64,000 nt of DNA from Camelus dromedarius. Its lineage: Eukaryota. Under the pieces are notes generated by a model, which saw nothing but the letters and a program-made list of their open reading frames with translations, did not search any database and was not told the DNA's origin. A program made the position numbers and the translations under genes. Below, in pieces: positions 4,918 to 62,547 of this stretch; position 1 is the first letter of the stretch, and each line of letters opens with the position of its first letter. The stretch is from the NCBI RefSeq assembly GCF_036321535.1, contig NC_087464.1:16802001-16866000 (forward strand), given 5' to 3'.

Positions 4918-7092
4918 CACTAGAGGGATGTAAGACAAGGGGAGTCATCACAGCTCTGCTTGTCTTAGCAAGACTAGAAATAACCTGCATGTCCAACAGT
5001 GAGGGAGGGGATCCGGGATTCTGGGCATCCCTTCAGTGGAGGGCTGTAAGGGAAAAAGAATGAGGTTTCTTGGATGGGGCTGAGAGAGGAGGGTGCCTCC
5101 ATGTAGGCTCTGTGCCCATCCCTCAGAGTGGCCACAAACGTCTTAGCCAAGGCGCCTGTGTCCCTCAGAGCCCCCTCTCCCCTGCAGCCTCACTCAGCAC
5201 CCCTGCATTGCGCTGCTCTGTCCCTGCTAGGCCCTGGGGCTGGGCAGAAGTGAGGTGGAAGATGTCAGAGCCTGCCAATCCCAGCCTTGTGTCCTTCAGC
5301 AACCCATTCAGTTCTCTTTGCCTCAGTCTTCTCATCCATGAAATGGGGACATTTTGCCCACCTTGCTGCTGAAATGAGCACCTAATACACAGAATAGGTG
5401 TCTAATAAGGGTGAATGTGACTTAAATTTTGTCCACTGGGAACTGTGGGAGTGCAGCCCAGAGGCCAGACTGGGGTCAGACTGGCGGGTGAGCCATGGGC
5501 TCTGGCCTGGCCTGTCACGCGCTCTGTGTGCGTGTTGGGGGTGCTGAGCCAGCTCCCCAGCACCCCCCCCCAGCAGACGGAGGGGAAGAGTTCACGCCAC
5601 TATTTCCTGAGGGAGGAGGAGGCACATCAGGCGACACAGGGTGACAGTCCCAGCCTTCACCCCCGCCCCCTGCCTGCCCGGAGATTCACCCAGCACCGTC
5701 GGGGTGGGGGTGACCTCAGTTCACCCACCTGTGCTGGGGGCTTGCCTTGGAGCTGTATTTGCTCAGTGAGCTCGCTGTGTGAAGAGAGAAAATGATTCGA
5801 GGGAAATTCTGCAGGAGCTGGTGGACACGGTTGGGTGAGGCTCCCCAGGGCTCTGAGCGGGCGCGGGGGCTGCGCTGTGAGAGGTGAGGGGTCTGAGGAG
5901 GAAGTTCCCACTGGGTCTGGAGGCCCTTGTTTCCAGTTAGACTCTTTATTGCTTTTCTCCCCTTACTGACTTAATGATTTCCCCTTTCACCCTCCCCTCC
6001 TCCTTTAAGCTCATATCTCATTGTTATTCTTTTAACAAACCTTAAAATAAAAATGCAGATTATCTTTTTTATTCCTCTCAAGGATCCCATGAGGAAGACT
6101 TTACCATGTCCTTATTTTTCAGATGAGGGAAAGTCAGAGAGGACAAGGGACCTGGCTGAGATCACCCCACTGGTAAGAGACCAGGGCCCAGTCTCACCCA
6201 CGTGTCTTGCTGTCTCTTTGACACCAGGCTCTGGCTCCCCCGGGGCCACAGGGCTGAGCAGAGCCAGACTGGCCAATGGGGGGCTCACAGCCCACAGCCA
6301 GGGGCAGCCCACAACACTGTGGGGTTGAGAGGGGTCAGGGAGGCTTCCAGAGGAGGGGCCTTGGGATCTGGTGGTGAGGGAAGGAGGGCAGGAAAGGGAT
6401 TCATGGAGGGAAAAGCATGTGCAAAGGCTGGATGGGATGGGAAAGGGGAACTCAGGTAGTGTGGCTGGAGTTAGGGTGTGAATGAAGACGGTGGGGTCAG
6501 GGCTCCACTCAAGAGGTGGGAGTGGGAGGTGAGGGTAGTGAAGTCAGATGGGCTTGGGCACCTCCTAGGGAGGACAGCCGTGGCCATGTATGTCCCAGAC
6601 ACTTCCCAAGGCTGCCTGGGTCCAGTGCCCACTAGAATGAGTATCTGTGTCACAGGCTTAGGAGCCTAGGACAGGGACAGGGACAGGAAACTCTGGCTGG
6701 AGGCTCAGAAAACAAGCTCATTGGTTCTTCCAGTGGAGAGGGGCCGAAGACCCTGGGACCAGCTCCTCTCCCGCTTTTTCCAGGATTCAGCTGCTGGGGT
6801 TGGGATCTGCCAAAACACTGGTCCTTGGGTTGTCTTCCTAAAAACCTTATTTACAGTAAAGTGTTAATGACTCATACAGCTTAAAATGTAGTATTTCTCA
6901 ACTCTGGCTGTTCAGAAGAATCATCTGAGGTGTGTGTGAAGGTAATAACCATTGTTTTTCTAAAAATGATACATACTCACTCTTAGACAAAACAAGTAAC
7001 ACAGAAAAGTACAAAGAAGGAAGCAATAATTCCCTCCATTAGAATGCCGGCTTCCCGAGCATGGGCTTTTTTCTTTATTTCCTTTTGGTTTC

Positions 7093-7223
7093 TTTTTTTT
7101 CCTTTTTCGGGGGTGGGGTGGTAATTAGGTTCATTTATTTACTTACTAATTTTAATGGAGGTACTGGGGTCTGAACCTCCTGCATGCTAAACAGGTGCTC
7201 TACCACTAAGCTATCCTATCCCC
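7093..7223 (-). mobile_element. Camelid tRNA-derived SINE (Vic-1 type)
   Basis: Reverse complement GGGGATAGGATAGCTTAGTGGTAGAGCACCTG...CCCAGTACCTCC plus AATAAA/AACCTAATTACC tail. Confidence 0.85.
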
Positions 7224-8577
7224 GCTTCTGAGCGCAGGATTTTTATTTGTTCTGTTCCCTGTATTCCCAGCACCTAGAACTTCCTGGCACAGAGTAGATG
7301 CTTATTAAAGCCCACCACCCCTGTTAACATTTGGTGACTGTCCTCTATACACAGAGAACTTTGAACAGACAAAGAGGTATAGGTAGAGAGAAAAGTAAAT
7401 AGATGGAAATAATTTTAAAACATGAGATTGTACCACACCTGCTATATTTAAGCTTAAAGTATTTAATTTTAATTGAGTTTAGCAGAAAGAAAATGAAGAA
7501 ATTGCTGAATCTTAAATAAATTTTTACTTTCCACAGAGACATTGGTTTATAACGAATTTCTCTAACAGTAAAGAAAAAGATTATGAAACTCATTAAGAGA
7601 TTGGAGTCTCGGGGAAGAAGAATAAACCCTTCACTTCGGGCAGGCTCAGTTTTTCTTGTGATGAAAAAAGTGATCACTTCCTCTGCATCCTCCCTCCCCA
7701 CGCTCCAAAGCTCCTGATTTTGATGCTAATATTTTCACTTTGTCAAGGTTTATAATAATTATACCCTGTTCGGCAACCATAGTTCTCCTGGTATTTTGTC
7801 TTAGTCCTGTACGTAAATATATTCTGTTCCATTTTTTTAAGAACATTGTGTCCCTGAGTTTTGTGTTTGGAGTTCTCTCTCCACTGTATCAGGAAAAATT
7901 GTGAAAGACTTTGAAATGGACCACCATCACCACCACCAAAGACCGGTGGGTGTCCGGTACTTAGGGACTTGTGCCTTTCATCCATGTCTTTGAGCAAATC
8001 TAACTTGTAGGAAACCTATAGCAATGCAAATGAGTCTTGTCCATCCGAAATGCAAATAGATTTTGTCCAGTGGAATGTAATCGATTGTTACCTGTGGCAA
8101 CTGATCAGTTTTGCACGTATCTGTAAATTCATTTCGGTATTTCTTGTCTGATGATATATGTGTATGTTGTTCCAATTTTCTTTTGAACCAGTTGGGAAAT
8201 ATTGCTGTTCCCTAATGACTTCATGAGTTAAACAAAAATTCTGACATGTGTTCAGTTTATATCATATGAGAGTCATGATTTTACCTTTGAAAACGCAGAC
8301 ACTTTTCGTTTTCATTGCTGAGTAGTTTTTTTTTCCTTCCAAAAAAGGCCTAAAAGTGCTATTTTCCCCGACCTTTTCTGTGTTGTCTATGAATCTGGAC
8401 AACCTCGCTGGGTGAAATATTCTTGATTTCCCCCTTTTCATACCACTTTGAGCACTCAGCTCCCTTGTCTTCTGGTCTTGAATGTTGCTGTGGAAAATTT
8501 TGAGGCCGTCGACCAAAAAGGCTACAAATAGGAAAAGAGTTTATTCGGGGTCTTAAGAATTGTAACTTCTTAAATTC

Positions 8578-9012
8578 TTTTTTTTGGGGGGGGGCAGGTA
8601 ATTAGGTTTATTATTACTATTTTTTTAATATATCATATTGTTTATTTAAAATCTAAGAAGTTTGAATAAAAATTAATCTTCATAATTGCTTCCAATATAA
8701 AAAATGATTGAAACAGATGATAATGCAACCAAAAGGAAATGGATATCATAAAAACTGCCTGATTAACTAAATCAATAAAAAAATGAAAGTATTATCCTGT
8801 GTTGGTTACATTATATTTCAAACTATTCAAATCAGAGTACATTCTAGCTATGAGTTAAGTTCAGGAAAAATTGACAATGAGAGTCACCTCCTACACAAAG
8901 AAATATACTTCTTTGTGTATTATTACTATTTTTTAATGAAGGCACTAGGGATTGAACCCAGGATCTCGTGCATGCTAAGCATGTGCTTTCCCGCTGAGCT
9001 CTACCCTCCTCC
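8578..9012 (-). mobile_element. Camelid tRNA-derived SINE split by a ~290-bp insertion
   Basis: Tail half at 8578-8625 and body/head at 8918-9012, with a 17-bp duplication at the break. Confidence 0.85.
8626..8917 (-). pseudogene. 5'-truncated retrocopy of an unidentified mRNA 3'UTR
   Basis: 17-bp TSD TATTATTACTATTTTTT (8609-8625, 8918-8934) at a TTTT/AA site; minus-strand AATAAA at 8641-8646, 14 nt before the A tract; AT-rich, no ORF. Confidence 0.55.
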
Positions 9013-9755
9013 TAGGAAGAGTTTCTCTAAACATTCTTTTACTTTAGTTGTGGGATAATCGACTTCAGGGACTCAAAGTCCCTAAGTACCGGACACCCAC
9101 CGGTCTTTGGTGGTGGTGATGGTGGTCCATTTCAAAGTCTTTCACAATTTTTCCTGATACAGTGGAGAGAGAACTCCAAACACAAAACTCAGGGACACAA
9201 TGTTCTTAAATTTACAATTTAAGAATTGTAAATCAGGAGACACAGACTTGGGTAAAACCGAAAGAGACTTCAGGGAAGAGAAAGAGTCAGGGGCTTGTTA
9301 AGGCAAAAGGCATGAGGTTGTACGCTGACACAAGAAAGGGAACATTTGCCTTTAAGGGATAGGCTGTCATGAGTTATTTTCGATAAGGGTCCAGTCAGCA
9401 TCTGGAGTTTCTGAAACATTGGGTAGATGTCCTAGATGTCTGTGTTAAGATGGTAAGTGCTCAAAAGGTCAGATTCCATGTGGGCTGAGGTGTACAGAAG
9501 TCATACTTCCTCGGTGGCCTCCAGGCTCCATTTTAGAGAGCTCCCTTAGAGACACCGACTCCATTTTGATTTTCCTCTCGCAAGGCCAGATTGCTTTTCT
9601 TCTCCCCCTTATTGTTGATTTGGTGCTTCCTCCTGGGTGCCTGAAGCGTTGTGTTCCAGATGTCCATCAGTCTGAATCCTTCTCGTGCCCTCTTAATCTG
9701 TGCAGTCGGTTCCCCCTTCGTTTCAAGGAGAGTTTCTCTGTTTAAAAACAATTTC

Positions 9756-9878
9756 TTTGCGAGGGAGGTAATTAAGTTATTTACTTACTTATTTATTTTA
9801 ATGGAGGTACTGGGGATTTGAAGCCAGGACCTCTTGCATGCTAAGCATGTGCTTTCCCGCTGAGCTCTACCCTCCTCC
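9756..9878 (-). mobile_element. Camelid tRNA-derived SINE
   Basis: Head GGAGGAGGGTAGAGCTCAGCGGGAAAGCACATGCTTAGCATGCA..., tail ...AACTTAATTACCTCCC. Confidence 0.88.
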
Positions 9879-10239
9879 TAGGAAGAGTTTCTCTAAACAT
9901 TCTTTTACTTTAGTTGTGGGATAATCGACTTCAGGGACTCAAATCATCTTAGGTTGGAAGGTCTGGGTTCCATGAGGATTGTCTTCTAACTCTTTGAATT
10001 TATGTGTCCTCTTTCTCTGAATTCGTTGTGGTTAGTTCAAGTTTCTCTCCGTGCTATGAATTTGCTTTTCAGGAGAGAGCCCTGCATTGTAACTCTGTGT
10101 TTAGATGTGTGAAGGTCCTTGTGCAGCCTCCCATCTTCAAGCTCTTTTTGCATTTCTCAATGCTATATTTTTTAAAAGTTTGTTTATTTTTAATTTTCTT
10201 TTTTGTTGTTGAAGGGGGATTAAAAGTTTGTTTATTTTT

Positions 10240-10375
10240 AATTTTCTTTTTTGTTGTTGAAGGGGGAGGTAATCAGATTTATTTGCTTATTTTTAGAGGA
10301 GGTACTGGGGATTGAACCCAGGACCTCATGCATGCTGAGCATGTGCTCTACCACTTAAGCCAGACCCTCCCCCCC
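10240..10375 (-). mobile_element. Camelid tRNA-derived SINE
   Basis: A-box/B-box head GGGGAGGGTCTGGCTTAAGTGGTAGAG...GGTTCAATCCCCAGTACC; tail region tandemly duplicated. Confidence 0.88.
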
Positions 10376-13300
10376 AGTGCTATTGTTCAATCATCTCTCC
10401 TTTGTGCTCTTTTTATCTTCGATTCATATTCTCATTAACTTTTCTCTCTCCTCAAGCTATTAGTTTCAGGGAAGCTGCCTTTGATCCTCGGCCTCATCCC
10501 CTTCCAGCCGTGCCCTCGTGATTTCCTTCCCCTGCCTGGCAGTTGGCGGGGTGGCCTTGCGAGTTCTTTTCATCTTGCTCAGTTGACTTGAGCATCTCCT
10601 GCAGACCCTCTACTCGTTCTCACACAGGAACCAGGCTGCAGTCCCAGAGAAGGACAGTCCCCGAGAAAGACTGCTTTTCTGGTGCCCAAATGTGCAGGGG
10701 TGGGGGAGGACCCCCCCCCCCAACATTGCTGGGGGCACGGGTCTTCTGTTTTCTGCCATCCCTTCCATGCCCTGCGCCCGGGCCCCCTCTGCCCCACCAG
10801 GAGTGGGTACTCCTCCACATCCCAGGCAGCCCAGGGTCCGTGAGGGCGGAGGGCCCTGGAGGCCGTTGCAGTGGAGGTTGTCTTCTTCACATGTTGGCCC
10901 ATTCTCTTCATAAACAATTTGTCATTGTTACTCATTTTGTCAGGTTTTGGGGCAGGAGAGTCTGTGTTCTCCCCTCACTCTGCCTTCTAAAGTCTCAATG
11001 CCTCTCCTAGGTAGACCCCTACAAATGCAAATCTCCAGGTCCTGCCTACCCAGAGGCCCAGAGGCTCTGATTCCACCCTCCCCACCCCAAGTGATGTGGG
11101 TGTACAGGCCAGGGTTGAGGACTGATGGGTCATCTACCAGGGCCATTTGCATTTTTGTCAATTTAAAAGAATGTGGCTCTGATTATGTAAAATCACATGG
11201 CAAAGAACACTTCACAGTTTTGGAATGTCCTCATGGGTAAACAAATTGGATCATTCATTCTTTTGGTGCAGCCTCAGAGGCCCAGAGAGGGGAAGTGATT
11301 GCCCAAGGTCACACAGCAAGTCAGCAACATGTTTGAAGGTTGGAAGAGATAAATTTGAAGAATTGGCAGTGCCAACCTCAGATCTGGGCCCTGGGGATGG
11401 GGGTAGCCCAACTCCATGGGCTGGAAGGTTTTTGCCTGTGGCTGGAGCCCCCTTCCCATCTGGCAGAGAGGATATGGTTGTGGCCCTTGCCCTGGGGAAC
11501 TCTGGCCAGGAGGGAAACTGGCTGTCCTAACCCACTCAGGAGGAGTGACCCCACCTCCCCTCAAACCTGCCACACCCCATTCACTCACAGCTCCGCGGCT
11601 GTGTTAGGAGCCCAGGGCCTGGTGAGGAAGCTGCCTCAGAAGAAGTGGGGTCAGCACTGGGGAGAGGTGGGGTCAGGCCTCTCTGGGAGGGTCTCCCTTC
11701 TTCCCCGGGAAGGGGCTGCTGGAGCAGTTGGGGCCACGACAGGGCAGTACAACTTGACCCTCCCTGGAGAGGACGGGCCAGGACCCTCAGGGCAGCTGGG
11801 CAGAGCCGCTCAGAGTGTCTGCCCCTGGCCTGTTCTCCTCCTGCCCCACCGACCTGGTGACATCAGGCAGCCTGAGGGGACTCCTGGGCCCTCAGGGAAT
11901 GATAGGACCCTCTCAGCCTGTGGTGATAGTTGGTTCCTGCAGAAGCACAGGCCCTCTGTATTGGGGCTACTGAGCTCAAAACAGTTCCATTCCACCAGGA
12001 AACAAGCAATACTTCATTGGAGTATTTTTGTGAGGAGATGGGGAAAAGGCATCTCTTTGTTCACCATAATAAAGCTGCAATTTAATGTCCCTCTGGGCAT
12101 TTCTGATCTTTCCCTGCTAAATTCTCCCACCCCATGTGTTCTGGAGTCCCTTCTGTGGCCAGCCTGGCCCTGTATTTGCACTGCACTCACCAACACAGCG
12201 GGGCTGACGGCGCCTCCGAGTGTGTCCCAGGGCGTGTGTGAATCACAATGTGGCTGCGCCACTCTGGAAAGTACAGGAAGTGACGCTGTGCCAGGGTCAT
12301 CCTGACCCCATGAGCTCCAGGAGCACCCAGGGAGGAGTGGACAACTCAGGAGTCAAACTCAGGCCGCCCAGGCCCCAGCGGCTGCTGAAGCCAACCGTGA
12401 ACACATCCCCGCATCGACGGGCTTCTGGGCTCTTGACAGCAACCTCCCAGAGGAGACAGGTCATGTGGCCACGTCTGTCCCACAGGGTCTTGTTTTTCAG
12501 ATGAGGAAGCAAGGCCAAGGAAAGCTCAGGGCTCCTGCAGCTGAGATGCCCCAGAGCCTGGACTCACCCCGTTCTGCAACTCCTTCGGCTATTCTAGTCT
12601 GAGCTGCAACATGGACACCTCTCCACACCCTGCTGAACGCGTGGCTTACTTGGTCTGTGATGGGGCATCTCCACTCACTCTTCCCCAAGGCTTTTCTCCC
12701 TAGAGATTGAGGGCGGCTTGTCATTAGCACTAATTGTTTTCAGGCATTTTTACCTAGGGTTTTACACTTCCTGATTTGCTCTCACCACCTTACAGTGTTG
12801 AGTCCTCTCCTCACTTTGGAGAAGGCCTGGCTCTCAGGGGAGGTGGTGCAGAGCTGAGATCCTCCCATCTTTGTAGCGAGTCTTCGTTTCAGAGAGCCCC
12901 TTGTGTTCCTGGGTGGGGCTGTACTGTCCAGGGAACGTTTTGTGGCCTTCTTCAGCCTCTCTGAGGAAGGGTCTCTTAACCTTTCAGGGGTGCTGGCCCC
13001 TTTGACCGTCTGATGAAAGTCGTGGCCAGACTTTTCCCAGAAAACTGCACAGACATATAAAAATAGTAATATAATGTAGGGGTTTATATGCCCTCAGACA
13101 TCTATCCCTGGAACTTCCAGGGGTTCCTAGAGTCTGGATTGATACCTCCTATGTTAGGAGATGCTCTCTGCCAATCTTCAGAACCCAGAATCTGGATGCT
13201 TATGATGCTTGGAGAACTGGATGTAACCATCCCTGGAGGCTTCTTTTTTAAGTGGGCAATTTCATAAAAGGATCAGGTTGAGAATGGCTGAGCCCACTGA

Positions 13301-22172: not shown

Positions 22173-22304
22173 NNNNNNNNNNNNNNNNNNNNNNNNNNNN
22201 NNNNNNNNNNNNNNNNNNNNNNNNNNNNNNNNNNNNNNNNNNNNNNNNNNNNNNNNNNNNNNNNNNNNNNNNNNNNNNNNNNNNNNNNNNNNNNNNNNNN
22301 NNNN
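22173..22304. other. Assembly gap/masked run, 132 N (others: 23117-23263, 45094-45240, 45376-45505, 48811-48960, 51822-52026)
   Basis: N runs counted directly. Confidence 0.98.
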
Positions 22305-23059: not shown

Positions 23060-23350
23060 ACCACAAAAATTATTATTTAGCTGTAAAAATGAGTGAAATC
23101 TTGCCATTTGCGACAANNNNNNNNNNNNNNNNNNNNNNNNNNNNNNNNNNNNNNNNNNNNNNNNNNNNNNNNNNNNNNNNNNNNNNNNNNNNNNNNNNNN
23201 NNNNNNNNNNNNNNNNNNNNNNNNNNNNNNNNNNNNNNNNNNNNNNNNNNNNNNNNNNNNNNNACAGAGAATAGATTGGTGGTTGCAAGAGGCAGGGTTG
23301 GGATGGTGTGTAGGATAAATGGGTGAACTGGTTTTTTAAAAAAAAGTTTA
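23060..23350 (+). mobile_element. L1 3'UTR fragment spanning an N gap
   Basis: GAAATCTTGCCATTTGCGACA[N147]ACAGAGAATAGATTGGTGGTTGC. Confidence 0.7.
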
Positions 23351-28632: not shown

Positions 28633-29205
28633 TAAAGACCTGTGGTGGCAGGAAGGGGAATGGAGGAGGGAGAAGGTGATGATTATGAGCTTTTCTGAAA
28701 GAACAGCATGGAAGGTGACGTCTACTAGTCAGTCAACTATGTGACCAGCTTATTTTCCAGGGACTTTACTATTAGAATTCCGGGCTGAGATATCTGGGGC
28801 CAAGGAAGTAACTCAGGTCAGCAGGCATTTATCACAAAATACTTAGAACATAATATTTTTCCTAAGGAACTTAGCTCCACATTGCAAAGATGTGTATACA
28901 CAACACAGTTAAACGTCCTAAGGCAGGCAAACAATGCACACAAAATCATTAGGTGACACCTGCTGTTAGGGATTACAGTTACCCATATCCTAACAGGCAG
29001 CGCTAGACTGAGGTAGAAAATTAAAATTATACCGTATGTCTGAATAACACAGTACTGTGTGTATCTTAAAGAATATATTTTATCTCAAGGATAAGTTTAA
29101 ACTGTTTCTCTGAGCTTTCAATTCAGAGATGAAAAAGACCGAGATCTACTTATGCATTGGTTTTAAAAGTTCCTCAGAAAGATTAACTTTGGGCCTATTA
29201 ATTTA

Positions 29206-29493
<288 letters not shown>

Positions 29494-39029: not shown

Positions 39030-40056
39030 TTAAATGAAATAAAATTATTAACATGACACTGTTCTGTATTATAGTTAACTGAATATTTTTGTTCATCTTT
39101 AAGATTTTAGTTGTATAGGAATAAATGTATGTTGTCAGGAGTAGCTGAGAATATTCTGCAATTCTATTACCAATGATAAAAATCTGAATTTTATTAACTG
39201 TATTTATCAGATTTGCATGTACTGAACCCATCATCCAAAATAAGCAGAGCACGGAACTATGGCAGTGCACTGTGCATCTCCCTGAGTATTTGGATCAAAG
39301 TGGTTAAGCTAGTGGTTCTCAAACTGTATGCCAAGGACCCCTGGGGGGGCGGGGTCAGGTGCTGCAATGAACTCACAGGGGTGCCAGCAGGGTGTTTGAA
39401 ATTTAAGGGAAACACAGTTAATACCTGGCATCTGTTGAGCACTACACAAACTACTAGTTTGAGGTAACTCATGATGTGCTACTTTCCTTCTAATGACATC
39501 TTCCTGAAGCTGAATTTCTGGCAGTTGCTTTGATAAAAACAAGTACCTCCCAAAATTCAACATGAAACAGGAAATGAAGGCAGTAGTGTCTAATCTGATC
39601 CCAAGGTTTGAGAACAACATGAACATATTTTCATTTGTAAGCAACTCTGGATAGTTAAAATTAAAAAAAATTTTTTTTTCTGGTTTATCAGCATTATTTT
39701 TTTCAAATGGCTGCTAAGTGTTTAGGATTTAAACACTTACTAAATTGTCTGTACCTAACTTAATACAGGTTCTGTTTAAAAACACAAATGGACACACTAA
39801 GTTGAAAAGTTTCATTTTTTTTCACTGAGAATCATCTTGGTACAGTACAAGGGACATGGACTTTGGAGTCAGATGAACCTGGGCTCCATCAGGGCTCTGC
39901 TCTGTCTGGAGATTTTTCTGCTTATACATGCCTGTATCATTTGAGTTTTACAGAACAAGCATACAATACTTCCAGCACAAAAATGAACTAAAATAAAACT
40001 TCCATATCCATCTAAGTCTTCTGGACTGTTTGAGGAAAACTGGACCAAAAGCACTA

Positions 40057-40392
<336 letters not shown>

Positions 40393-44784: not shown

Positions 44785-45555
44785 GTTACTAGGGAATGTA
44801 AACCAAAATCACAATGAGATACCTACCACTTTACATCCACTAGGATGGATATAGTAAAAAAGATAATAATGAGTGTTGGAGAGGAGGTAGAGACACTGGA
44901 ACCTCATACCTTGTTGGCAGGAATGTAAAATTTCATACCTGCTTTGGAAAACAATTTGGCAGTTCCTCAAAAAGTTAAACATAGAGGTTCCACATGACTA
45001 AGCAACTCCACTCCTAGGTATCAACCCATGAGAACTGAAAACATATGTTCACACGAAAACCTGTACAGAGATGTTCACACATTATTCACAATANNNNNNN
45101 NNNNNNNNNNNNNNNNNNNNNNNNNNNNNNNNNNNNNNNNNNNNNNNNNNNNNNNNNNNNNNNNNNNNNNNNNNNNNNNNNNNNNNNNNNNNNNNNNNNN
45201 NNNNNNNNNNNNNNNNNNNNNNNNNNNNNNNNNNNNNNNNTGCTAAGTAAGAGAGGTCAGTCACATAAGAACACATACTGTATGATTTTATTTACAAAAA
45301 CTGCAGAATAGGAAATTCTATAGAGATAGATGAGTAATAGTAGATTAGTGGTTGTCAAGGATTAGAGGGCTGGTGNNNNNNNNNNNNNNNNNNNNNNNNN
45401 NNNNNNNNNNNNNNNNNNNNNNNNNNNNNNNNNNNNNNNNNNNNNNNNNNNNNNNNNNNNNNNNNNNNNNNNNNNNNNNNNNNNNNNNNNNNNNNNNNNN
45501 NNNNNGGGTAAATTTTATGATACGTGAATTATGTCTCAATAAATTTTTTTTGATT
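44785..45555 (+). mobile_element. L1MB/L1ME 3' end with two N gaps
   Basis: CAAAATCACAATGAGATACC...TTTGGAAAACAATTTGGCAGTTCCTCAAAAAGTTAAAC...AATTATGTCTCAATAAA. Confidence 0.7.
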
Positions 45556-47611: not shown

Positions 47612-49467
47612 TTATTTTGAGAAAACATAGTGTTAGCCACCTTTGAAAATTAAATGCTGAATTTTCACAATGCAAACTTAATCATCAAGTTGTCTTACAC
47701 TGAACACAGCCACCGGCAGCTTACATAACAAAAAACAAATGGAAGTTAGGTTAAGGATTAAAACGAAAAGAATGGTGATAAGGAGGGAATGTCTATGGGA
47801 CTAGATACAAAGAATCGGAAGGATTGCAGAGGAGAAAAACATGTAGAAAAGACAGGAGCCTAGTCTCCAAGATGAGGTAGATTTAAAAACACAGATGGCT
47901 AAAATATTATTTAAAAGATTAAGAAAATCACAGAGAAAATACACACAACTTTAAGCCACTAATGTTCCCAAATTTTGTGAACGTGGAGAGCTGGGTGCAG
48001 GGCCACAGAAGCGCCAGCCTACAGATCCTGGGTCACCGTACTTTGGCCCTGTGCCCCAAAGCAATCGTGGCTGACTCTAGACAGAAGTGCTACTCTTTCT
48101 CTGGCCTCTTGCTCCAGGTGTCCCACTTCCTCACACTTTAGTGAGCTCTTCGTCTCCACCATCTCCTTTCTTGCGTCTCAGTCTCTTCCGTGAATTCTTC
48201 CTGTTTGCTCCACCTGTGTTCTAGGACCCTCCAATCCTAAAACCCACAAAAGCTGCTCTTGACCCTACATTCCCCTGCAGCTGGCAGCCCACCTTATTCT
48301 TTCCCTCCAAATGCCCCCAACCAACTAACCATACATCCAGTTTCAACTCTTATCACTTCCATTCCGGCTTCTGCCAATACTATTCTACCAAAATTGCTTC
48401 ATCAAAGCTTTTAAAAACTAAAGAAAGGTGAGGGAATTGTTACAGGGTCCTCGGCCATGCGGACAACCTCCGACTGCCCCAGGTTCCAACATCTCCAGAG
48501 GAAGGAGGGAGAACACCATCTCTCTTTAAGGAGTTAAGGTTAGGACATAAAGACATCTCGGTGCCTGGGTGGATGGAATGAAACAGAGACTATAAAGTAC
48601 AATAACCTGTGGTAAGGAGGTTGCCTATATTCAGAGGTGGAGATCAGAGGGAGGAAAGATGGGGAGTAAAATCACTGGCTTTCTGCCTTAGTATCTAAAT
48701 CCAGTAGAGAGAGTTCACATCAACTGATGGAATGGATAAGTAAAATGTGGAATGCCCAGTCAACGGAAGATTATTCAAGCCATACAAAGGAATGAAGTAG
48801 CCATGTCACTNNNNNNNNNNNNNNNNNNNNNNNNNNNNNNNNNNNNNNNNNNNNNNNNNNNNNNNNNNNNNNNNNNNNNNNNNNNNNNNNNNNNNNNNNN
48901 NNNNNNNNNNNNNNNNNNNNNNNNNNNNNNNNNNNNNNNNNNNNNNNNNNNNNNNNNNNNACAACGCTGTGAAAATACCAAAAAAAAGCACTAAATTGTA
49001 TCCTATTTTAAGTGGGCAAATTTTATGGTGTGTCAATTATATCTCAACAAAGATTTTCTTTTTAAAAAAAGCTTTGGATTCCTATGTATCTTCACTAAGG
49101 GAGGACAGATGTTGCCATTAAAATAGTAAATATTAGGTCCTGGGTGTCAAACTCATGTCATTTTAAGTGACGTTTCAGGAAATGGAATCAATTTGTACTC
49201 AGCTTTTGTTGCTTTTGGAACTGAGGAACTGTCATGGGCATGTGCACTAAATGGTTTATGTGAATTGAAAAACAAAGTCAGAATATCTGTTTTAATATGC
49301 AAGAAAATAAGTCAAGTTTGGCTGATTGGTTTGGCCATGAAAACTGGCTTTGCCAATTAGGTTATAAGGTAGTCATGTCTCATTGTTCGAAAGAGCTAAT
49401 TGGCAGCCACAACTTTGGACAAAACTATAATTTAAAAGTATATCACATAATAAAAAAATAGGTCAAA

Positions 49468-51479: not shown

Positions 51480-52205
51480 CATACCCAATAGGATAGATAT
51501 AATAAAAAAGATACAGTAACAACTGTTAGTGTGGATGTGAAGAAATTGTAACCCTTATACCCGTATTATTGCAGATAAAGTGAAATGGTGCAGCTCCTTT
51601 GGAAAACAGTCTGGCAGTTCTTCAAAAGGTTAAACAAAGAGTTACCAATGACTTAACAATTCCACTAACTATATGACCAAGAGAAATAAAAACATACGTC
51701 CACACATCCACAAGACAACTTGTACACAAATGCTCATAGAAGCATTAGTAATAATAGCCCAAAATGGAAACAACTCAAATATCCATGACAAATAATACAT
51801 GACAAATGGATAAATAAAACANNNNNNNNNNNNNNNNNNNNNNNNNNNNNNNNNNNNNNNNNNNNNNNNNNNNNNNNNNNNNNNNNNNNNNNNNNNNNNN
51901 NNNNNNNNNNNNNNNNNNNNNNNNNNNNNNNNNNNNNNNNNNNNNNNNNNNNNNNNNNNNNNNNNNNNNNNNNNNNNNNNNNNNNNNNNNNNNNNNNNNN
52001 NNNNNNNNNNNNNNNNNNNNNNNNNNACAGTGGGAATTGACTGCTAATGGATATAGTTTCTTTTAAGGGAGACATGTTCTAAAATTAGATAGTGGTGGGG
52101 TTGCACAGCCCTGCAAATAAATGAGAAAAAAAAAACCCCACAGAATTATATATTTTAAATAGGTGAATTTAAAGGTATGCAAATTATATCTCAAGACAGC
52201 TGTTT
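51480..52205 (+). mobile_element. L1MB-type 3' end with N gap
   Basis: TTTGGAAAACAGTCTGGCAGTTCTTCAAAAGGTTAAAC...AATTATATCTCAA. Confidence 0.7.
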
Positions 52206-60086: not shown

Positions 60087-61800
60087 TCAGGGCATTATTG
60101 TAATAAGTCAGTTTTAGCTTTTTTACCCTTTGCCCTGCAAAATCACTGGTGTTCATTTCCCTTCTTTAACTGTTTACCAGGGTTTCCTCGCCACCAAGTG
60201 TCAAAAGCCACCACCCTTTTCCTGAGGCTCAGATTCAAGTTTTTCCTTGATTTTTTTTTTTTGCAGCACCTACTACTACTATTTATTCTCCCCCTTTTCT
60301 CTCCTGATCTTTAAGACAAACGTGGTTTTCTACTCACTTTAAAGTCCCTTTCCTGGTTCCACTTCCTCCACCTGTCCCTTAAATTTGGGAATCTTTCAGA
60401 CACTTGGGATTGGGCTCTTCAGACATTCTTTTTTGGAATTTTTCTGATCCTATGATCTTAAATATCACTGATGTGCAAAGAACTGCCTAGATCTCTTAAG
60501 ATAAGAACTGACACCCTCCTAAGTTCCAGTCCTGCCTGCACTTTCAAGTGCCTGCAAGACATTTCTACCTGAATGACTTCCCAACACTTTTAAGCTCAAC
60601 AAGCCTTAAAATAACCCTCCTCGGCTTTTCTTCAAATCTGCCTCTGCCTCCTGACTCCCTTATTTCTGTCAATGGTGTCAGGGTCTTCCCAGTCACCGAG
60701 TCTGAAACCTCACAGGCATCCCAGCTTCCTCTGATCCTTCTTCAATAATGTCTCTCACTTCCGCCCCCGTCCCGCACCCTCGTGGTCACAGCTCTGGCTC
60801 AGCGCAGGGAACAAGAGGTGCTCACGCCAGCGCCGGCGGCCACTCCAACCCCAACACTCAACTGCCTCAAAGCTAATTGTGAACACCAAGCATGACACAT
60901 TCAAACATGGTACAAAAATATATCCATTAATGGTTATTTTAAAGGTCAACAGTGCAACTGTAAGAACAATCTCCGTGGAATTAAGCCATCAGTGGCAAAA
61001 ATAGGGAGAGCTGTACTTTACAAAACCTTATACGTATAAACTTGTTTCAGTTAAGAAAACAATTTGTGATAACTTTATAGGGTTGATGTAAGGCTTTCAA
61101 ATTAATTTCGGCTTTTCTCGGCAGCCTTTACAACAGCTAACTTCACTCTGCCAAAACCTTCTCTTACTGAACTGTGAGTTCCAAGAGGGTAGGAGTTCAC
61201 CTATTCCCGGGATCTGTGCACAGAACATGGCACAGAGTGGGCACCCAACAAGTACTTGTTGAATGAATTAAAATGATTCTAGAGCAAAAGGAATAATTTG
61301 ACTTATTTAAAAAAATTCTGACTTCATACCTCTCCTAGGCTGCCCTAAATTTTAATATTTTTAGACATTAAACACGTTTCTCTCCTTTTATAAACTGATC
61401 AGTTCTCATCAATCCAGAATTCTGAAAATACACACAATTACGTTTTAAACATATAAATTCAGCTTTGCTTTTACCCCCCCACCTCCAATCATTTAAAAAA
61501 CCTAGCCCTCATGAGCTTTATTGTTTTAGGAACTAAAAAATGTTAATTTAAAGGCAAAGCACATTTGGAATGACTTTAGAGCTTTACTACAATAGGTTAT
61601 AATTACACATTTTATAAAACTACAGCTGCTACAGAGACAAAAGAGCAACTTGCTTTTGAAAATGTGATTTGTAATTCATATTATCAGCAGAAATTTGCAT
61701 AGAAACAATGTCGTTTTCAGGCAATGATGATTTGCTATGGTTTTCCTTACACAATTCCTATTTTGGGCAGTTTTGTTTTCAAATAAAATATAAGCATTCA

Positions 61801-62547
<747 letters not shown>

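Follow-up and report, generated by a model that had tools for sequence, protein, structure and literature searches.

Template switching during SDSA between dispersed repeats, as in SINE- or Alu-mediated gene conversion in which the flank of a repeat is co-copied, is known from work in yeast and in humans. The inserts left by polymerase theta are typically a few to about 30 nt long, with templates that lie within tens of bases of the break. Complex templated insertions of the MMBIR/FoSTeS type are attributed to serial template switching in replicative repair (PMC8421209, PMC5120786, PMC11293582). The MMB-TI signature that has been searched for consists of inverted templates within 100 bp and of insertions no longer than a sequencing read (PMC8421209). 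Fold-back (snap-back) inverted duplications in yeast are described as mostly 5-34 bp long and copied from the broken end’s own flank (PMC11724301; PMC3907307), and the template-switch mutations of great apes are presented as short-range events below kilobase scales (PMC7954356).

At the locus described here, which lies in a 64-kb window (the whole stretch of DNA that was analyzed), two exact copies of neighboring sequence are fused into a single patch at the head of an old SINE (Table 1). The direct copy is 109 nt long and the inverted copy 135 nt; the identity of neither pair can be extended by one base at either end, the two inverted arms are separated by a spacer of 1105 nt, and the direct and inverted copies overlap by AA at 9076-9077. 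The original prediction had listed both copies, with their ends and the spacer, and each of these proved exact. Across the whole patch there are 0 differences from the donors in 242 nt. From the start of the direct copy to that of donor 2, further right, the distance is 866 nt; on the left, the end of donor 1 and the patch are 1043 nt apart. As in other templated insertions, the inserts consist entirely (100%) of copies of nearby DNA, with both donors within 1.3 kb. Some homology is found at every junction: 45 nt of SINE sequence at the first, AA together with an 11/12-nt motif at the second and the 8-nt TTCTTAAA at the third. When the 64-kb window was compared with itself, with cut-offs of at least 95% identity and at least 40 nt, the 109-nt and 135-nt pairs were the sole repeats returned. 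An exact 48-nt tandem duplication at 10172-10267 was missed by the same self-comparison.

Table 1. Positions of the patch, its donors, the host SINE and the BLM coding sequences within the window.
Feature	Position	Strand	Remarks
SINE1 left target-site duplication, TTCTTAAA	8567-8574		Directly before the T-rich tail; same 8-mer at 9203-9210
Old SINE1, ancestral part	8575-8968	-	Aligned with three further SINEs of the window; tail 8575-8626, body ~8921-8968
Donor 1, template of the inverted copy	7836-7970	+	Exact reverse complement at 9076-9210; ends ...ACTTAGGGACT-T
Donor 2, SINE2 head (to 9879) and right flank	9835-9943	+	Ends ...ACTTCAGGGACT-CAAA
Direct copy of 9835-9943	8969-9077	+	Identical; 45 nt of SINE2 head and 64 nt of non-SINE flank of SINE2, including the right target-site duplication
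Inverted copy of donor 1	9076-9210	-	135 nt, 100% complementary
Junction 2 hairpin	9060-9091		ACTT-C-AGGGACT (9062-9073), loop CAA (9074-9076), AGTCCCT-AAGT (9077-9087)
Junction 3	9203-9210		TTCTTAAA; final 8 nt of the inverted copy and, at once, SINE1 right target-site duplication
Nearest recognizable BLM coding sequence	29203-29481	-	~19 kb from the patch
BLM Helicase_C	40054-40338	-	BLM exon
BLM BDHCT_assoc	61798-62427	-	BLM exon

The abrupt onset of identity at 8969 sets the patch apart from sequence shared by inheritance. In alignment, SINE1 and SINE2 are only ~80% alike to the left of this position, with an indel, and 109 identical bases follow to its right, a change that common descent would not give. 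The chance that 45 more SINE bases should be identical is about 0.8^45 = 4e-5, with the 64 non-SINE bases left uncounted, and, judged from the sequence, chance is excluded as the source of the copies. The three-junction anatomy that had been proposed, with its first switch inside homologous SINE sequence, is borne out.

The direction of copying can be read from several characters of the donors. The direct copy bears the SINE2-private variants TTTCCCGC... and CTCTACCCTCCTCCT, which are lacking in SINE0 and SINE3, two other copies in the window. SINE2 is flanked by a target-site duplication of its own (AGGAGAGTTTCTCT at 9726-9739 and AGGAAGAGTTTCTCT at 9880-9894), hence the flank within 9835-9943 is in its original place, and positions 9014-9028 of the direct copy repeat the right-hand member of that duplication, AGGAAGAGTTTCTCT. 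Since private mutations and target-site duplication of SINE2 were copied together, 9835-9943 is the donor. An independent Logan contig, L001, which comes from another animal (SRR36380800), contains donor 1 unbroken and at 100% identity; the contig matches the window over 5262-8609 at 99.67% identity and ends before the junctions, and 7836-7970 is thus the original copy. By these characters the outer copies are the donors and the patch is derived, as the original prediction had supposed; the private variants of SINE2, its target-site duplication and L001 all point the same way.

SINE1, the host of the patch, is an old, decayed tRNA-derived SINE on the minus strand, whose head ends near 9013 and which is split by a 293-nt AT-rich insertion (25% GC, ~8627-8920) bordered by the direct repeat TTATTACTATTTTTT. 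Because TTCTTAAA stands before the SINE1 tail and recurs at 9203-9210 ahead of the unique LTR-like flank, which restarts at 9211, it is the SINE1 target-site duplication, and the patch fills a break exactly at the SINE1 head without loss. The foreign DNA occupies the exact gap between the SINE1 head and the right TTCTTAAA, with flank neither lost nor doubled. The net gain is 189 nt (9014-9202), the 45-nt head of SINE1 (8969-9013) having been replaced by SINE2 sequence, and the loss of flank is zero. A gap between head and target-site duplication that has been filled while the flanks stay intact is the pattern expected from second-end capture in break repair.

The same position, at the 5′ junction of SINE1 and exactly between its head and its target-site duplication, would also be occupied by DNA added through template jumping of reverse transcriptase when SINE1 integrated, that is, by 5′-end addition during target-primed reverse transcription, and chimeric 5′ junctions of L1-mobilized elements are known. 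SINE1, however, has diverged by ~20% and was later split by an insertion; its tail, together with the left TTCTTAAA, is present in the other animal represented by L001, which reaches 8609, and the patch is therefore far younger than the element that houses it. The patch itself matches its donors at all 242 nt and is lacking in other animals, and the SINE1 head has been overwritten with mutations that SINE2 gained in place. This mismatch between the ages of SINE1 and of the patch excludes an origin at integration, to which we attach next to no credence.

The occurrence of the patch was examined in public DNA runs from three closely related camel species, covering 12 studies, by means of sampled 31-mers. 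Over 7700-10000 these runs hold 0.89-0.93 of the sampled words. Over 9040-9240, the interval that contains junctions 2 and 3, exactly 13 of the 16 sampled words are held by 19 of the 20 best-holding runs (three organisms, 10 studies), a count that fits a site without the insertion; one run, X31 (organism A, from a multi-sample study of 2024), holds 15, and none of the 20 best-holding runs holds all 16. About 50 of the 171 words in this interval are junction-specific, such that ~4.7 junction words are expected among those sampled, and the words that do not cross a junction sit inside the copies or in sequence that every animal has. Because all non-junction words are common to every animal, the three missing words are best read as junction words, with the qualification that the identities of the sampled words were deduced rather than seen and that Logan contigs can drop heterozygous variants, which weakens the absence in the 19 runs. 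The best reading is accordingly that none of the three organisms has the patch fixed, which agrees with its zero divergence; the patch is rare or private, and the event is, to judge from its unaltered copies, very recent. A very recent date had been proposed from the lack of divergence, and it is upheld by the lack of junction words in 19 of the 20 best-holding runs, across three species.

Zero divergence would also be seen in an older, long-fixed insertion whose copies had been kept identical to their donors by continuing gene conversion. However, runs of each of the three organisms lack junction-specific words, arms of 109 and 135 nt offer little length for conversion to be sustained, and identity ends abruptly at all four ends; we regard this history as highly improbable. 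Metagenome scans with the unique flank 9226-9251 and with junction 2 gave no match, as expected of host DNA. Among the open reading frames through which contigs of other animals were sought, one led to L001, 21 others on either side had no entry, and homology searches with the 72-aa and 91-aa frames gave no match, which reflects missing gene calls and not absent sequence.

That 19 of the 20 best runs lack junction words, and that no run has 16 of 16, is also what a reference-assembly artefact would produce. Here a chimeric or misplaced long read, or re-assembly during gap filling, would have put copies of the neighboring sequence at 9014-9202, and polishing would have made them letter-perfect; the zero divergence is what Illumina polishing would give. 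The site is a likely short-read gap, with a T/G homopolymer run, the insertion of 25% GC and SINEs. In a published dromedary pipeline ~74,000 gaps were filled, and often over-filled, with raw 11x PacBio reads (PBJelly), after which the same assembly was polished with Pilon (Illumina) and filled by ABySS Sealer at k = 20-90 (PMC6618069); if the window derives from that assembly lineage, local errors are plausible.

Several features of the locus speak against such an error. To arise as a chimera, the patch would have required three switches inside 1.3 kb, the last of them landing exactly where the first had left, with the flank unchanged. The 64-kb self-comparison brought up no comparable exact copy of nearby sequence, the 48-nt tandem duplication, which it missed, aside. 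Chimeras in amplification-free long-read libraries are mostly ligations of unrelated loci and not local microhomology chains, and the chain of local microhomologies seen here is unlike them. At junction 2 the overlap is only 2 nt, which no graph or overlap step makes; because neither a de Bruijn nor an overlap join can create a junction of this kind, junction 2 would have been carried by a physical molecule. Finally, two of the three missing words are present in X31, which seems to be a second data set with the structure, although it lacks one word and is not independent if X31 is the reference animal or its parent. We consider an artefact of the assembly unlikely on balance. Two narrower candidates were rejected: a graph error of ABySS Sealer or Pilon as the source of junction 2, where the overlap is only 2 nt, and a rare SNP in 9211-9240 as the source of the extra words in X31, which is ~100x less likely than junction words by a rough Poisson estimate and for which only 8 of the 171 words qualify.

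Junction 2, at which the direct copy turns into the inverted one, carries more than the AA overlap. The motif ACTT(C)AGGGACT stands on the plus strand at the ends of both donors, as ACTTCAGGGACT in donor 2 and ACTTAGGGACT in donor 1, with a match of 11/12 nt. In the product, 9062-9065 and 9067-9073 pair with 9077-9087 in a stem of 11 bp with one bulge, and the fold has an energy of -10.4 kcal/mol (z = -3.3). Among ~193,000 inverted joins drawn at random from the window, a fraction of 7.4e-4 reach at least 11 paired bases, a test made post hoc, and the 7-bp core alone occurs at a rate of 0.8%. The motif at junction 2 is non-random. Its large excess, although measured post hoc, indicates that the switch was probably guided by more than the AA overlap, which alone probably did not direct it; the arrangement suggests instead a motif-guided U-turn. 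The original prediction had described this junction as an AA overlap that builds an AGGGACT hairpin, with AGGGACT at both donor ends. These features are there, and the stem is longer than supposed (11 bp); with the 11/12-nt motif at the donor ends, the AA overlap is no longer a sufficient explanation.

How the motif might have acted is less obvious, as in its direct orientation it could not have primed synthesis on the strand that served as template. Self snap-back of the growing strand was rejected, there being no 3′ pairing to prime it and the sequence being AGTCCCT-AAGTACC where AGTCCCT-GAAGTCG would be expected; after the 7-bp stem the sequence is that of donor 1 (7836-7970) and not of the upstream strand, as a fold-back would have it. 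The simplest proposal would be that the motif let the growing strand pair with the next template, on its complementary strand, where the mismatched 3′ end would not be extendable, and that the growing strand then flipped onto the displaced strand through an AA/TT pair. We offer only tentatively, as a rather doubtful proposal, that the strand entered the next template via ACTT(C)AGGGACT, stalled on its mismatched 3′ end and turned onto the displaced strand of the same D-loop.

Overall, we regard real and recent break repair with serial template switching, of the SDSA or MMBIR type, as the probable origin of the patch, which would be a very young germline insertion, rare or private to the lineage of the sequenced animal, and hold with good confidence that a real event of some kind, under whichever model, took place. 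We infer both that the patch exists in the animal rather than in the assembly alone and that the pathway was SDSA or template switching of the MMBIR type. In the mechanism that we propose, a double-strand break or a collapsed fork at the head of the old SINE1 would have been mended in one repair event, in which the broken end was extended by synthesis that hopped among three nearby templates. This synthesis would have laid down 135 nt of 7836-7970 in inverted orientation and then 109 nt of 9835-9943, with the turn at the common ACTT(C)AGGGACT, and closure would have come through annealing by SINE-to-SINE homology (at least 45 nt) on one side and by the 8-nt TTCTTAAA on the other.

Which switch came first would not be readable from the product, with which both orders appear equally consistent. 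In order A, that of the original prediction, SINE homology would have been used first and TTCTTAAA last. In order B, the right end would have invaded donor 1 via TTTAAGAA, made its U-turn into donor 2 and copied back through the SINE2 head, after which, as the final step, the left end would have annealed through at least 45 nt of SINE homology. Order B seems slightly more natural than order A. The original prediction had synthesis return to the LTR by microhomology in TTCTTAAA; the inverted copy does end in 8 nt that the flank has too, at 9203-9210, but the order of switches is not fixed by them, and TTCTTAAA is the target-site duplication of SINE1.

The patch lies in intergenic repeat DNA downstream of BLM. 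No recognizable gene or conserved element is touched, and a phenotype is therefore not expected. Nearness to BLM had been judged a probable coincidence, and the ~19 kb that separate the patch from the nearest recognizable BLM coding sequence accord with that judgment. Even were the masked runs near 22-23 kb to be the last exons of BLM, a 10-kb flank of the gene would end near 12 kb, short of the patch. No function is implied, and the class of event is well known. If real, the patch is a clean natural germline case of one break repaired from three templates, with donors intact and no later decay, whereby every junction can be read to the base, including the motif-guided turn-around. The two 135-bp arms, perfectly inverted and 1.1 kb apart, would also be a possible weak point for later rearrangement, and dromedary populations could be scored for presence or absence of the patch as a marker; an artefact would point to a local error in the reference assembly. 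Should the turn-around within a D-loop be true, it would be a little-documented step with a signature, namely a motif at both donor ends and a hairpin at the junction. Were this signature general, it would offer a means of tracing inverted templated insertions across germline genomes, and inverted junctions described as having “two-nucleotide microhomology” would need re-reading.

Among the described systems, polymerase-theta end joining (TMEJ) resembles the patch in the microhomology of 2-8 nt at two of its junctions and in filler that is templated and not random. It differs in tract lengths, in template distances and in the 45-nt homologous junction, and the patch is neither a short insert nor copied from a template near the break, as inserts of this pathway are. 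Templated insertion by polymerase theta, which the original prediction had named as one option, fits poorly with tracts of 109 and 135 nt and templates ~0.9-1.0 kb away. Fold-back duplications also have an inverted copy joined through a short hairpin-forming sequence; unlike them, the patch continues after its stem with sequence from 7836-7970, ~2 kb away. With the template switches of great apes the patch has in common a germline record, inverted local copies and hairpin-forming sequence, whereas it is a net insertion from two templates on opposite sides.

The likeness to insertions of the MMBIR/FoSTeS type is broader: the tracts copy nearby DNA, more than one template is used, one of them inverted, the junctions show microhomology or homeology and the flanks are kept. 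One junction departs from this type in using 45 nt of SINE homeology and not microhomology. The patch also falls outside the MMB-TI signature, with tracts of 109 and 135 nt and templates 866 nt (right) and 1043 nt (left) away, and it is far smaller than DUP-TRP/INV-DUP rearrangements, which range from kb to Mb. As in SDSA, SINE2 overwrites the SINE1 head, and synthesis runs on into the unique flank of SINE2 and ends by annealing to the other break end; unlike plain SDSA, the patch has an extra, inverted third segment acquired through the U-turn at junction 2. The mechanism class put forward by the original prediction, serial template switching in repair or replication, is supported.

The target site of SINE1, the old minus-strand SINE at whose head lies a probable templated insertion of 189 nt (the patch), is palindromic: TTCTTAAA and TTTAAGAA pair as a hairpin whose 8-bp stem encloses a loop of 7 nt, and TTAAGAATTGTAA is present on both sides of the element. 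A site prone to hairpin formation may have favoured the integration of SINE1 as well as the later break. SINE1 is also interrupted by 293 nt of AT-rich sequence (~25% GC) with the direct repeat TTATTACTATTTTTT on both flanks. This insert resembles a fragment that was retroposed into SINE1 afterwards and made a target-site duplication of its own. The only independent contig retrieved for comparison, L001 (Logan, run SRR36380800, another animal), covers window 5262-8609 and shows 9 substitutions and a single indel over these 3.35 kb, a difference of 0.33%; it ends at 8609, inside the SINE1 tail and just short of the AT-rich insertion.

About 230 nt to the right of donor 2 (9835-9943), the source of the direct copy in the patch, a 48-nt unit is perfectly duplicated in tandem (100% identity), making this the second zero-divergence duplication within the same 2.5 kb as the patch. 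Possible explanations are a further event of very recent date, a polymorphism or a slip in the assembly. A look-up of the product of the 103-aa ORF that spans it returned no record elsewhere, an absence of a gene call there rather than of the sequence.

Six N runs (130-205 nt) occur around BLM, four between recognisable minus-strand exons of the gene and two, near 22-23 kb, downstream of these exons. All six have the size of exons and are therefore probably masked exons rather than gaps. Two GC-rich islands (0.55-0.66) lie on either side of the repeat-rich stretch containing the patch. An open frame of 321 codons (11340-12305) gave no exact match when its product was looked up. The islands may serve as CpG-island promoters or as enhancers for transcripts, so far unannotated, that lie between BLM and its neighbouring gene.

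Window coordinates of the features described
Feature	First	Second
Target-site palindrome arms	9203-9210	9218-9225
TTAAGAATTGTAA copies	8551-8563 (within 8549-8574)	9219-9231 (within 9203-9231)
Region with the AT-rich insertion (insertion itself about 8627-8920)	8608-8938	
Tandem units	10172-10219	10220-10267
GC-rich islands	6150-6750	10500-12000
N runs	22173-22304	23117-23263
N runs	45094-45240	45376-45505
N runs	48811-48960	51822-52026
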